Assembly (NCBI GenBank): GCA_038087875.1 | Contig: CM075978.1 | Coordinates: 179,800,001-179,864,000 of the forward strand | DNA length: 64,000 bases | Direction: 5' to 3' | Source: Malacoraja senta | Lineage: Eukaryota | Part shown: positions 7,934 through 45,100 of the stretch, in pieces | How positions within the stretch are numbered: position 1 is the stretch's first letter | How the letters are laid out: each line of letters opens with the position of its first letter | The notes under the pieces: generated by a model | What the model saw: only the letters and a program-made list of their open reading frames with translations | Database searches by the model: none | What the model was told of the DNA's origin: nothing | Position numbers and translations under genes: made by a program

Positions 7934-8288
7934 CAGTGATGGAAATGGGTTTTAGGAACTACGGGTGCTCTAAGGTCCGTGAGGCTGAGGGTGTGAAGGA
8001 AGGGGGGGGTAATTTTTTTTATGTGCGGTCATACCCATGTAAGAGTACAAGAATGCATAACTTGTTTATTTTGTATTTATAATATCGTTTATTGTGCATT
8101 ATGTCATAGCTGCTTTCTTGCCTCTCTCTCTCTCTCTCTCTGAATCTCTCTCTGTGTCTCTGTCTCTGTCTCTCTCTGTCTCTTCCTCCCCCCTCCCCCT
8201 CCCCCCTGTGTTGGATGCAGCCATCGTCTGCTTCGGTGAGGCAAGCAGGTCGGTGTTTGATCACAAGGCCCCTCGGAGACTGTGTCTG

Positions 8289-8421
8289 ATTGGCCGCCGA
8301 GTGACCAGCACATTATGTGATTGGACACAATGCCCTTGGAGACACGGCTGATTGGACGGGAATTTTAAGGGAAGCTGGTTGGTGATTGGAGGGAATCCCC
8401 TTAGTGACAGCGGTTGATTGG
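8289..8421 (+). promoter_or_regulatory. Five reverse CCAAT boxes (ATTGG) spaced 31-34 bp apart
   Basis: ATTGG at 8289, 8320, 8351, 8385 and 8417. Three are kept in copy 2 (CCAAT at 41272, 41304, 41335). Confidence 0.4.
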
Positions 8422-8516
8422 CTGCCAAATAATCGGGCACAAAAAATTGACATATAGGAAAAGAATAAAATCGTAATTCCGATTTAAATAGGAAGAATAT
8501 CATGCCTGATCTGCAG

Positions 8517-8548
8517 CAAAGATACTAGTATATGCTCTAGTATCTTTG
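8517..8548. mobile_element. 32-bp micro-MITE (hAT-like)
   Basis: CAAAGATACTAG-tatatgct-CTAGTATCTTTG with an 8-bp TSD ATCTGCAG at 8509-8516 and 8549-8556. Confidence 0.8.
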
Positions 8549-9133
8549 ATCTGCAGTTCCTTCCTATTGAAGAACAACCCTGGCCCGAAACAACTCCTAA
8601 TCCATTCCCTCCACAGATGCCGCCTAGCCCGCTGAGTTCCTCCAGCACTCTGTGTTTTTTATTTAAGTCTTGAAATTGAAGATAGACATAAAGCTGGAGT
8701 AACTCAGTGGGACAGGCAGCGACTCTGGAGAGAAGACCCTTCTTCAGACTGAACTGAACTCTCGTCGGTGAGAGTACTTGTGATTGTCTGCAGAAGGGTC
8801 TCGACCCAAAACGCCACCCACTCCCCAGAGCCGCCGCCCTTCCCGCTGAGCCACCCCAGACCCCCTTGTGTCCACCTTCAACTCCAGAGCCAAACAAAAA
8901 CACAAAGTGCTGGAGGAACTCAGCGGGCCAGGAGGCACCCGCGGAGGGAACGGACCAGGAGCCGCCACAGCCCAGGGACACCCCCCAGCAGGAAGGAACC
9001 GCAGATGCAGCCGTCCCCGCAAAACGGCAAATGATTCCGGGAATACCGAGGCGAGAAGGTGAGAGAAAGGGAGTGAGAGAACAAGAGAGATCCAAAGGAC
9101 GGATTCGGATCACAATTACGACTCGCTGAGACC

Positions 9134-40599: not shown

Positions 40600-41145
40600 C
40601 TCTCTCGCTCTCTCACTCCCTCTCTTTCACCCTCTCGCCTTGGCATTCCCGGAATCATTTGGCGTTTTGCGGGGACGGCTGCATCTGCGGTTCCTTCCTG
40701 TTGGGGGGTGGGGGGGAAACCTGGCCTGTGGCGGCTCCTGGTCCGTTCCCTCTGCGGGTGCCGCCTGAGTTCCTCCAGCACTCTGTGTTTTTTGTTTGGC
40801 TCTGGAGTTGAAGGTGGACACGGGGGGGGGGGGGGGGGGGGGGCTCAGCAGGTCGGGCGGTGGCTCTGGGGAGTGGGTGGTGTTTCGGGTCGAGACCCTT
40901 CTGCAGACAATCACAAGTACTCTCACCGACGAGAGTTCAGTTCAGTCTGAAGAAGGGTCTTCTCTCCAGAGTCGCTGCCTGTCCAGCTGAGTTACTCCAG
41001 CTTTATGTCTAACTTTAATTTCAAGAATTAAATAAAAAATACAGAGTGCTGGAGGAACTCAGCGGGCTAGGCGGCATCTGTGGAGGGAATGGATTAGGAG
41101 TTGTTTCGGGCCTGGATTCTTCTTCAATAGGAAGGAACTACAGAT

Positions 41146-41177
41146 CAAAGATACTAGAGCGGATACTCGTATCTTTG
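41146..41177. mobile_element. 32-bp micro-MITE, counterpart of 8517-8548 in the duplicated element
   Basis: CAAAGATACTAG-agcggata-CTCGTATCTTTG; TSD ctacagat / ctgcagat (7/8). Confidence 0.78.
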
Positions 41178-41504
41178 CTGCAGATCAGGCATGATATTCT
41201 TCCGATTGAACTCGTAATTCCGATTTTATTGTTTTCCTATTTTCAATTTTTGGTGCCCGATTATTTGGCGGCCAATCACCCACTGTCTCTAAGGGCATTG
41301 TGTCCAATCACATAATGCGCTGGTCACTCGGCAGCCAATCAGACACAGTCTCCTAGGGGCCTTTTGATCAATCACCGACCTGCTTCCCTCACAGAAGCAG
41401 ACGATGGCTGCAGCCAACACAGAGAGAGAGAGAGAGAGAGAGAGAGAGAGAGAGAGAGAGAGAGAGAGAGTGAGAGATGCAAGAAAGCAGCTATGACATA
41501 TAAT

Positions 41505-42180
41505 CAGAATCACACTTTATTCGCCAAGTATGTTTTGCAACGTACGAGGAATCCCCCACATTCCTCACTGTGATGGAAGGCGAAAAAAAGTTCAAGTCCC
41601 TTCCCTTAGTTCTTCCTCGATCGTGGGCCTCGAGCCCCCATTGACGGGACGATCTTGACTCCCATAGCCGGCGGCTTTTCAGGCCCTCAGCGTCGAAGCG
41701 ATCCGCTCACGCATCGGGGGGATGTCAGCTCCCCCACGCTGGACGATCGAACCTCGCGTCATGGCTGGTTGAACCTTCTGCGACGTTGGAACTCCCGACT
41801 AGCATCTCCAGAAGACTGCGAGCTCTTGATGTTTAAAGTCCGCGGTGGTCGTGGTGGGTGCGATCCCAGGCAAGGGATCAGCTCCAATGTTAAGTCCGCG
41901 CCCCGCGGTGGGGCTCACGACAGTCCGAGGAGGCCTCCAGCTGCAGCAATGGAAGGCTGCAGAGCGCCCAGAGAATGTGATCCAAATGTGATCTGAAAAT
42001 TAATCACATCTCCGGGATGGTAAGAACATGAAAAAAAGTTTTTCCCTCTGCCCTCCCCCACATAAAACAAACCGAAGAACATTCAAACAAACTTTTAACA
42101 CACTAAAAAATAACAAAAAGAATGGAAAAACGAACAGACTGCCGGCAGGGCAGCCATCTCCCCAGCGCCCCTGGTGGACT
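41505..42180 (-). mobile_element. GC-rich retroposon inserted only in Pack-hAT copy 2
   Basis: The empty site in copy 1 at ~8095-8110 (attgtgcattatgtcatagc) is contiguous. The body is related to 2741-3435. Confidence 0.7.
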
Positions 42181-45100
42181 ATAATACACAATAAACTATA
42201 TTATAAATACACAATAAACAAGTTATGCATTCTTGTACTCTTACATGGGTATGACCGCACAGTAAAAAATCCCCCCCCCCCCCACTTCCTTCCCAACCTC
42301 AGCCTCACAGACCTTAGAGTACACCTGGTTCCTAAAACACATTTCCATCACTGGTTACCATCGAAGAAGTACTGAAGGTACTGTCGTGCATGAAGGTAGA
42401 CAAATCACCAGGGCCTGATCAGATATATCTGAGGACATTGCGGGAAACTAGAGACAAAATTGCGGGAGCTCTGGTTAAAATTTACGAGTCGTCCTTAAAT
42501 ACAGGAGAGGTGCCGGAAGACTGGAGGGTGGCAAGTGTTCTGCTTCTTTTCAAGAAGGGCGGCAGGGAAAATGCTGGAAACTATAAGCCGGTGAGCTTAA
42601 CATCTGTAGTTGGAAAGTTATTAGAGATTATTCTGAGGAATAGGTTATACAGGAATTTGAATGGGCATGGTTTTGTACGTGGGAGGTCGTGTCGCACAGA
42701 TTTTTTTGAAGAAGTGACCAAAAAGGTCGATGAGGGCAGATCTGTAGATGTTGTGTACATGGATTTCAGTAAGGCATTCGACAAGTTTCCGCATGGTCTG
42801 GAAGGTTAGATCGCATGGGATCCAAGGAGACATAGCTGAATGGATAGCAAATTGGCTCCATGGAATGAAGCAGAGGGTGATGGTGGTAGGTTGCTTCTTG
42901 GACTGGAGGCCTGTGACTTGTGGTGTGCCGCAGGGATTGGTGCTGGTCCCGTTACTGTTTGTCATCTACATCAATGATTTGGATGATACAGGGCAAGATT
43001 AGCAAGTTTGCTGATGATGCAAAAGTGAGTGGTTTTGCAGATAATGAAGATGGGTGTGAAAGATTGCAGCAGGATCTGGACCGATTGGCCAGGTGGGCGG
43101 TGGAATGGTTAATGGAATTTAACACAGAGAAGTGTGAGGTGTTGCATTTTGGGACGTCAAACAAGGGCAGGACCAACACAGTAAATGGCAGGCCTCTGGG
43201 TAGTGTTGTAGAGCAGAGGGATCTAGGAGTACAAGTGCATGGTTCGTTGAAGGTTGAGTCGCAGTAGATAAGGTGGTCAAAAAGGCTTTGGCACTTTGGC
43301 CTTCATCAGTCAGAGTATTGAGTATAGAAGTTGGGAGGTCATGTTGCAGTTGCATAAGATGTTGGTGAGACCGCATTTAGAATATTGTCTTCAGTTCTGG
43401 GCACCATGTTATAGGAAACATATTATCAAGCTTGAAATGGTCCAGAAAAGATTTATGAGGAAGTTGCCAGGACTAGAGGGTGTGAGCTATAAGGAGAGGT
43501 TGAGTAGGCTAGGTCTCTATTCCATGGAGTGCAGGAGGATGAGTAGTAATATTATAGAGGTGTACAAAAACATGAGAGGGGTAGATGCACGGAGTTTCTT
43601 GCCCAGAGTAAGGGAATCGAGAACCAGAGGACATAGGTTCAAGGTGAAGGGGAAAAGATTTAATAGGAATCCGAGGGGTAACTTTTTCACACAAAGGGTG
43701 GTGGGTGTATGGAACAAACTGGCAGAGGAGGTAGTTGAGGCTGGGACTATCACATTGTTTAAGAAACAGTGAGACGTGGATAGGACAGGTTTGGAGCAAT
43801 ATTGTCCTAGCGCAGGCAAGTGCGACTAGTGTAGCTGGGACATTGTTGGCCGGTGTGGGCAAGTTGGGCCGAAGGGCCTGTTTCCACACTGCATCACTCT
43901 ATGACTCAATCACATGCAATTTCTCCTCACCACTGAATCCAATTTAACGTGGGATGGCACTCTGCCTCCAGTTTAGTCACCTCACCACCGTTAATTGGTT
44001 TTCTTTGCCATCTGTGATATTCTGAATATTATGCGGCCAACCAAGTAATCCCTGCTCGGAACATTACAATTTATTTAGGTTTAAGAAACAGGAAACATTC
44101 CCATGTATTGAAAATCAACAATCAGCCCACATCTCATTCGCCATCTCCCCAACTCCCACCAAATATAGCAGGCAAGCCTATTTCCGAAATTAACACATGT
44201 TGTATGTTTTCATCTGATGGCTACGATGCGTCACTCTAAGCCTGGGCTGCCATTTGTCTACCTCCTCTTTGCCCTCCTGATTTTCTTCTTAAAGATGCTC
44301 CTCAGTTCCCAAAACTCCTCCAGGGATACACTTGATCCCGGCTGTCGATATCTTTCCCATGCCTCTTTTTTTTCCTGGCCAGAGCCTCAATCTATCTCAA
44401 CATCCACAGTTCCTCAATCCCACCTGCCCACCCATTCACTCTAACAGGAACATGCATCCCCTGAACTCTCGTTGAAAGAAGTGAGTAAGAGAATGCATCT
44501 TAATTTTTAAAGTAATATTACAGTCAATGCATTTGCAATCTTAACAAAATATTTGATGAAAACCTTTGAAATATTTTATGGCAAAGTATCGCAGAAAGCC
44601 CAGCTTAAATCACGACATGCTCTGGTGTGTCACATTTATTGCATCCAGTGGATTTTTGAGAATATCATCTAATATTTGGTCAATACAAAAAATAAAGAAA
44701 GAATAACAATGATTACCTAACATCCCGAGATGAGAGTGAAAGCAATTGATTCTAGTACTATTCTGATGGAAAGGAAGATACCTAATGTTACATAGGAGTG
44801 GTGACGAAAAGCGGGTACCATCTACCAGTTCACCTGACAACGGTGGGAAAGGAAATACTAGAATCCTATTACCGAAATGACAACATGGCAGATGATAAAT
44901 TATAAGATTGGGCAAACCAGCACAGATTTGCGAAAGCCACGTTATGTATAGATATTAGTTAGAGAGTAGATATATGAAGCTGCAAATACTGGTTTACAAA
45001 AAACAAAACAAAGTGCTGGTGTAACTCAATGGGTCAGGCTGCATCTTTGGAGAACATGCAGAGGTGATGTTTTGGGGCGGGACCCATCTTCAGGCTGATT

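Follow-up and report, generated by a model that had tools for sequence, protein, structure and literature searches.

A non-autonomous hAT element with a copper amine oxidase exon fragment as its probable cargo in the skate Malacoraja senta

Introduction

DNA transposons with terminal inverted repeats (TIRs) that carry host gene sequence, termed Pack-TIRs, were surveyed in animals by Tan et al. (2021, Nat Commun 12:4280; PMC8277862), who reported 370 of them in 100 animal genomes (81 vertebrate), 208 belonging to the hAT superfamily. The cargo had a median length of 224 bp and was larger in multicopy cases, 13% of Pack-TIRs held exonic cargo, and multicopy families accounted for four of the 370, in frog and alligator (PMC8277862). 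Here we describe a hAT-type carrier present twice in a 64,000-nucleotide stretch of the skate Malacoraja senta (assembly GCA_038087875.1, contig CM075978.1, positions 179,800,001 to 179,864,000 of the forward strand; hereafter the window), both copies holding the same fragment of a copper amine oxidase (AOC) gene. We consider it very probable that the carrier is a non-autonomous hAT with a 388-bp piece from the first coding exon of a chondrichthyan AOC3-like gene, that it moved after capturing this piece, and that the piece has been a neutral passenger; this reading is drawn from two copies, both in the one 64-kb window. A preliminary description of this DNA had already recognized a Pack-type hAT, and had considered such capture little documented in vertebrates, a view that the 208 published Pack-hATs do not bear out.

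In both skate copies, host sequence that is not of transposon origin lies between the two TIR ends, and the copies sit in unrelated flanks with different target-site duplications (TSDs), as is expected of a multicopy Pack-TIR. The closest described relative in form is Pack-hAT-N8_XT of Xenopus tropicalis (PMC8277862), likewise a non-autonomous hAT with intact ends and a short host gene fragment, and likewise present in more than one copy with distinct TSDs, so that it has transposed repeatedly. The 388 bp of skate cargo is near the median reported for vertebrate Pack-hATs. Unlike Pack-hAT-N8_XT, the skate carrier has a cartilaginous fish as host, and its cargo comes from within a coding exon and not from 5' untranslated region; and whereas the survey targeted young cases with an identifiable parent, the skate copies, at 6-8% divergence, are old and have taken up much sequence from other transposons. 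The carrier belongs to the published vertebrate Pack-hAT class, from whose described members its host lineage, its age and the extent of its nesting set it apart.

Rice Pack-MULEs and plant Pack-TYPE elements offer a further parallel, as TIR elements that gain gene fragments and amplify them, most of this cargo being non-functional. Pack-MULEs are, however, Mutator elements with 9-11-bp TSDs and long TIRs, whereas the skate carrier is a hAT with 8-bp TSDs, was seen at far lower copy number and gives no sign of fragments from several genes. Maize Ac/Ds elements make 8-bp TSDs, have short TIRs starting with CAG, and include non-autonomous derivatives with a rearranged or foreign interior; the carrier TIR, CAGTGATGGAAA, resembles the Ac terminus, CAGGGATGAAA.

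The locus is a dissected multicopy Pack-hAT in a cartilaginous fish, multicopy cases having been rare in the vertebrate survey. It shows hATs of the skate lineage to have had enough activity to mobilize an exon fragment after its capture and, later, to insert into one another. By itself the case is one more data point and brings no new principle. It also bears on annotation: the amine oxidase open reading frame (ORF) found here is not to be called a gene, and AOC-like matches elsewhere in this genome are likely to be transposon cargo. A literature search returned no paper linking Pack-type terms with elasmobranchs, the ranking of its results being uninformative.

Two insertions at independent target sites

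The two copies of the carrier and their immediate surroundings are as follows; LINE stands for long interspersed element.

7934..14204, plus strand: copy 1 of the non-autonomous hAT with AOC cargo, its length counting two insertions that nested in it later; 12-bp TIR and 8-bp TSD both perfect
7926-7933 and 14205-14212: TSD of copy 1, CCGATGGG, perfect on both sides
38147..42353, minus strand: copy 2, AOC-carrying hAT; perfect 8-bp TSD, differing from that of copy 1
38139-38146 and 42354-42361: TSD of copy 2, GTTACCAT, perfect on both sides
42362..42806, plus strand: downstream half of a LINE ORF2 (reverse transcriptase) interrupted by copy 2, its frame restored on joining to the upstream half, which ends at 38146

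The left and right termini of copy 1, CAGTGATGGAAATGGG and CCCGTTTCCATCACTG, form a 16-bp TIR in which 15 of 16 positions match; the carrier consensus is CAGTGATGGAAA(T/C)GGG, whose 12-bp core is perfect in copy 1. In copy 2 the end at 42353 is intact, while that at 38147 is reduced to CAGTG and then a poly-G run, 13 bases that copy 1 retains being gone. With 8-bp TSDs and short TIRs starting with (C/T)AG, the carrier is a non-autonomous member of the hAT superfamily, an assignment made by TIR and TSD structure because no autonomous hAT with these TIRs was seen. No ORF of at least 70 amino acids (aa) in either copy contains a transposase domain, and no other paired carrier TIR lies within the window. 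Of the two target sites, GTTACCAT fits the weak consensus commonly given for hATs, nTnnnnAn, and CCGATGGG does not.

The window was scanned for 12-bp inverted ends starting with CAG or TAG (at most two mismatches) accompanied by 8-bp duplications (at most one mismatch). This gave three configurations, against 0.1 expected per window in block-shuffled sequence: copy 1, an element nested inside copy 1, and an unrelated 499-bp element at 27741-28239.

Both target sites can be rebuilt. When copy 2 and one GTTACCAT are removed, joining 38146 to 42362, a LINE ORF2 frame continues over the junction (...SVLRAVSVT/IEEVLKVLSCMKVDKSPGPD...); the right part of this ORF2 resembles Pfam RVT_1 below threshold (E 5e-5; 23.5 bits, the cut-off being 29.6 bits). 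Copy 1 lies in the tail, resembling that of a short interspersed element (SINE), of a dispersed repeat, and its rebuilt empty site matches uninterrupted tails at three other places in the window (16929-17052, 13096-13138 and 30951-31021). Once nested elements are removed, the copies are collinear from the left end to the AOC piece and diverge by 6-8.6%. The sequence directly beside one copy is unrelated to that beside the other, and for this reason we conclude that the copies arose by transposition and not by segmental duplication.

A possible objection is that a single locus, with a hAT beside an AOC pseudogene, was copied together with its surroundings in an inverted segmental duplication, or that the second copy is an assembly artefact. 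Indeed, a mere 24 kb, interrupted by two assembly gaps, separates the copies, which are oppositely oriented, and a 0.8-kb segment of 79% identity lies on the same side of both (14445-15220 and 35904-36681). This shared segment, however, is a LINE fragment, the sole similarity near the flanks, and it differs far more than the copies themselves do (79% identity, against 91-94% between copies) and lies at unequal distances (241 bp for copy 1, 1466 bp for copy 2); what directly adjoins the copies is SINE-like tail in one case and LINE ORF2 in the other, each copy has its own perfect TSD, and excision of copy 2 restores the LINE frame. The divergence between the copies and their different nested insertions exclude an assembly or haplotype duplicate. 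We regard this explanation as extremely unlikely.

The three runs of N in the window (20247-20396, 29833-30005 and 63786-63934) fall neither inside either copy nor in its immediate flanks: copy 1 and both its flanks are on the gap-free stretch 1-20246, and copy 2 is on 30006-63785. Because two of the gaps fall between the copies, their spacing of about 24 kb and their relative orientation are uncertain as assembled, whereas the elements themselves are not.

Much of the preliminary description stands on these points. Its coordinates and ends, including the one degenerate end of copy 2, its two different perfect TSDs, its placement of copy 1 in a SINE tail and of copy 2 in a LINE ORF2 whose frame returns on removal, its hAT assignment, its report that neither copy shows a transposase, and its preference for transposition over segmental duplication all agree with what we find. 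It had named homology beyond the TSDs and an assembly artefact as outcomes that would overturn it; the former is confined to the LINE fragment just described, and the latter is excluded as above.

The amine oxidase cargo

The cargo comprises 388 bp, or about 129 codons, and is present between the TIRs in both copies:

9093..9133, plus strand: start of the AOC3-like piece in copy 1 (41 bases), upstream of a nested hAT; codons Q-R-T-D-S-D-H-N-Y-D-S-L-R-P, matching shark HRKESDPNYASLKP
10291..10637, plus strand: remaining 347 of the 388 bases in copy 1; frame open
40210..40596, minus strand: AOC3-like piece of copy 2, unbroken over 387 bp, its frame shifted by the loss of one base from an A run (about 40288-40290)

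In copy 1 the first segment is in frame with the second after removal of 9134-10290. The preliminary description had both copies share a fragment of about 130 codons, which is correct as to its presence in both, but in copy 1 the fragment is not contiguous, being split into 41 and 347 bases by the nested hAT. The peptide is that of an amine oxidase, as had been proposed: Pfam Cu_amine_oxid is hit with E 5e-24 by a 166-codon ORF of copy 1 (10244-10744) and with E 7e-18 by copy 2, over model positions 3-107 of 407. Matches of the piece in the PDB, with E values of 1e-23 to 1e-24, are to bovine serum amine oxidase, human diamine oxidase and VAP-1. The piece can be aligned, gap-free, with AOC3/AOC2-type oxidases (the 754-aa shark protein; VAP-1, PDB 2C10; the bovine enzyme, PDB 1TU5) where their catalytic domain begins; unlike them, it has about 129 of some 750 residues, without the N2 and N3 domains, the tyrosine that gives topaquinone (TPQ), or the HxH motif.

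Among 268 family members drawn from protein collections, the best identities to the piece are 50-53%, ungapped over 121 residues, with teleost AOC3-like proteins. The AOC3-like protein of the shark Heptranchias perlo (P0332) reaches 66% (78/118, no gaps, aa 291-408), and runs such as LDSHYGIGKSSNELV are common only to the piece and this shark protein. The shark reference was found through a region search seeded with coelacanth AOC3 and is the one chondrichthyan protein obtained. Its 66% identity, compared with at most 53% to bony vertebrates, and the shark-only runs point to a chondrichthyan AOC3-type gene as the donor, presumably the skate's own, in keeping with the earlier proposal that a host fragment was the cargo. 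A 2025 survey lists an AOC1 and an AOC2-type gene in cartilaginous fishes (PMC12058724), an inventory consistent with a host donor. In a phylogeny of the 125-residue region the piece is on a long branch beside the AOC3/AOCX clade, with basal ray-finned fishes and coelacanth nearest; this placement would be consistent with such a donor and is too weak to say more.

A close parent was not recovered among 1.84 billion cluster representatives, where the best matches are only 44-49% identical and are bony-vertebrate or invertebrate oxidases. The clusters of those best matches contain no chondrichthyan members, and an axolotl AOC3-like region query gave no chondrichthyan among the 120 matches listed. 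Short predicted proteins with the fragment, as would come from other copies called as genes, were absent among 5.8 billion proteins.

At the shark locus (L001) the first coding exon encodes aa 1-528, and DNA similarity to the carrier is confined to the piece. Read at the codon level, the homology spans roughly aa 280 to 408 of the shark protein. Because both breakpoints fall inside exon 1, this is a partial-exon capture, of 388 bp from within that exon. No further AOC segment lies in the window outside the piece, nor does any AOC gene. The TPQ motif NYD (shark 460-462) and the HxH copper ligands (510-512) are both outside the piece, which stops at about aa 408, and the piece cannot encode a functional copper amine oxidase.

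State of the cargo

Between the two copies the ratio of non-synonymous to synonymous rates (dN/dS) is 0.68 over 124 codons, with 18 non-synonymous and seven synonymous changes, which is not different from 1 (p 0.45). The AOC piece has diverged by 5.8% and the adjacent non-coding sequence by 8.1%; extra constraint on the piece was considered and is not upheld, this difference not being significant (p 0.21). Of 19 positions conserved across the family, 17 are kept in the piece and 18 in the inferred common ancestor of the copies, inside the range of real enzymes. Such retention suggests that the capture was not long before the copies split and is no evidence of selection on the piece. To judge from these comparisons, the captured piece looks like a passenger in neutral drift, with no sign of function.

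The preliminary description had reasoned that, as the fragment lacks the TPQ site, any function would be at the RNA level. The TPQ site is indeed lacking; an RNA function is not supported. More broadly, a co-opted piece might yield antisense transcripts or small RNAs directed at the AOC3-like gene, or be translated within a chimeric protein. The frame of copy 1 is open once the nested element is removed, the conserved positions are largely kept, and exonic Pack-TIR cargo is often transcribed (Tan et al., PMC8277862). However, the dN/dS cannot be told from neutrality, the piece is no better conserved than the non-coding DNA flanking it, the frame is shifted in copy 2 and broken up in copy 1 by a 1.1-kb transposon; and with about 3% change per lineage an open frame of 129 codons is expected by chance. 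We hold co-option to be very unlikely.

Nested insertions and the ancestral element

Inside the copies we distinguish the following features:

8288..8421, plus strand: left subterminal array of five TGATTGG motifs in the same orientation, spaced 31-34 bp; copy 2 keeps three (41277-41345)
9134..10282, plus strand: hAT-N, a second hAT-like element, nested in copy 1; TIR CAGGGCCGGCCT / CAGGGCCAGCCT; splits the AOC piece
10638..14128, plus strand: third element, nested in copy 1, 3491 bp, CAGGG-ended; ends CAGGGCTC...GAGCCCTG; 18-bp subterminal inverted repeat
14129..14204, plus strand: the last 76 bp of copy 1, its right end, with a homologous counterpart at that end of copy 2
38212..40204, minus strand: block found in copy 2 only, 1993 bp, flanked by a 15-bp direct repeat, ATGGAGACTGGAAAC (40205-40219) / ATGGAAACTGGAAAC (38197-38211)
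38792..39941, minus strand: second copy of hAT-N, inside the copy-2 block, at another site than in copy 1; 8% diverged from the hAT-N of copy 1; weak TSD (6/8), CCACTCCC / CCCCTACC
41499..42181, minus strand: insertion in the left subterminal region of copy 2 only, 683 bp; copy 1 has the empty site; part resembles the repeat hosting copy 1

In copy 1, hAT-N starts with CAGGGCCGGCCT, ends with AGGCTGGCCCTG and has the TSD CTGAGACC (9126-9133) / CTGAAACC (10283-10290); at the same spot copy 2 is uninterrupted, with a single CTGAGACC. This TIR and TSD, and the empty site kept by copy 2, establish 9134-10282 as a hAT-N inserted into the AOC piece of copy 1. A first BLAST map had suggested that the AOC piece moved internally between the copies; this was ruled out, the block that seemed to have moved being the nested hAT with its own TIR and TSD.

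The element at 10638-14128 has an imperfect TSD, GGAAACTG against GACTG, within a slippage-prone GAAACTG repeat, and contains Penelope-like GIY-YIG fragments (sub-threshold, E ~1e-3, below the Pfam cut-off) and other repeats. With it removed, ...CTCATGGAAACTG abuts GAAACTGAAAAGTAGG..., so that the 3' end of the AOC piece joins the 76-bp right end. Copy 2 reads ...CTCATGGAGACTGGAAAC, then the 1993-bp block, then a second ATGGAAACTGGAAAC that runs into the same right end. The direct repeat at the block's edges (15 of 15 and 14 of 15) is far beyond chance and may simply mark a target duplication or a deletion. Either the block inserted into copy 2 with duplication of 15 bp, or the lineage of copy 1 lost it through deletion between the two repeats.

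Later insertions make up most of the bulk of both copies (6.3 kb and 4.2 kb). The preliminary description had missed the nested insertions. Without them the ancestral element comes to about 1.6 kb, which rises to about 2.4 kb should one of the copy-2 blocks have belonged to it; its parts would have followed the order left end, (CT)n, TGATTGG array, some 700 bp of no assigned origin, AOC piece, and 76-bp right end. The array, with five motifs in about 130 bp of copy 1 against 0.59 per kb over the window, was not detected by Tandem Repeats Finder; TGATTGG is a reverse CCAAT box, and the array could be a set of transposase-binding repeats or a cluster of NF-Y-type sites. A search of 7000-15500 with Rfam found nothing.

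Origin of the carrier

We propose that an internal exon piece (about aa 280-408) was copied into a hAT, probably by template switching in double-strand-gap repair or in replication, as in the models put forward for animal Pack-TIRs (PMC8277862). The loaded element then moved at least once, presumably in trans by means of the hAT transposase of an autonomous relative, to give two insertions in opposite orientation, one in a SINE-like repeat tail and one in a LINE ORF2, each with its own 8-bp target duplication. Local hopping is possible, given the 24-kb spacing as assembled. Maize Ac/Ds favours linked sites, and such a preference would fit this spacing. Both copies were later enlarged by independent nested insertions, two separate hAT-N insertions among them. 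That hATs were active at that time is demonstrated by two CAGGG-ended elements that came to be nested in the carrier.

An alternative is macro-transposition, in which two separate hATs, or hAT ends, inserted to the left and right of a stretch of an AOC3-like gene or pseudogene, after which the transposase mobilized everything between them as one composite unit. The AOC piece directly adjoins the 76-bp right end, its other side is the roughly 700 bp of non-AOC sequence without an assigned origin, and hATs in this window do insert into each other and cluster locally, all of which such a composite would accommodate. Yet neither neighbour of the piece is AOC-derived, whereas in the shark gene conserved coding sequence of exon 1 surrounds it; because the piece lies amid that conserved sequence of the same exon, a simple gene interval would have brought more of exon 1 with it. 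The left and right ends, moreover, are a matched 16-bp TIR pair, as in a single family member. We consider the composite improbable.

Several observations weigh against capture by a single hAT followed by its transposition, and keep our confidence in that reading short of certainty. Only two copies were examined, and one TIR of copy 2 is damaged. No autonomous hAT with the carrier TIRs was seen in the window, and the superfamily was assigned by TIR and TSD structure. To the right of the AOC piece the copies have just the final 76 bp in common, and peeling away the later insertions has to accept an imperfect TSD in copy 1 (10638-14128) and a block of ambiguous origin in copy 2 (38212-40204). 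The identity of the donor and the age of the capture are both deduced from one orthologue, that of the shark.

A bolder extension is that skates hold an unusually productive gene-capturing system, a vertebrate counterpart of rice Pack-MULEs in which several hAT or other TIR families amplify exon fragments, and in which some cargo, possibly including the AOC3-like piece, might feed small-RNA or chimeric transcripts. The evidence at hand consists of one two-copy family in neutral drift, and we think it unlikely that such a wider system exists.

Other repeats in the window

The hAT-N element is 1.15 kb long, CAGGGCCGGCC-ended, with a (GGGA)n-rich interior. Only two are present in the window, both within AOC-carrier copies at different sites, a pattern that local hopping, or a tendency to target other hATs, might explain. 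The LINE segments at 14445-15220 and 35904-36681 are of the same family and in opposite orientation, the second belonging to the LINE whose ORF2 copy 2 interrupted. Weak GIY-YIG (Penelope-like) repeats occur at 10998-11454 and 11727-12178, in tandem inside the 3.5-kb element of copy 1, and again at 58009-58479 and 60746-61214.

A solitary perfect 12-base match to the carrier TIR CAGTGATGGAAA lies at 46951-46962, where about 0.01 would be expected by chance. It was set aside as unrelated to the carrier, having neither extended similarity nor a partner end, and may be a relic or a coincidence. The 499-bp element at 27741-28239 resembles a miniature inverted-repeat transposable element; its 12-bp inverted ends (CAGGCACGTGCC) match perfectly, as do the two copies of its 8-bp duplication (GTATAAAC), and it is another hAT-type insertion, not related to the AOC carrier. 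Finally, an inverted repeat that resembles a hairpin, each arm about 85-90 bp long, lies at 38250-38530 in the copy-2 block; a motif within it, ...tcgacccgaaatgtca..., recurs at several other sites in the window.

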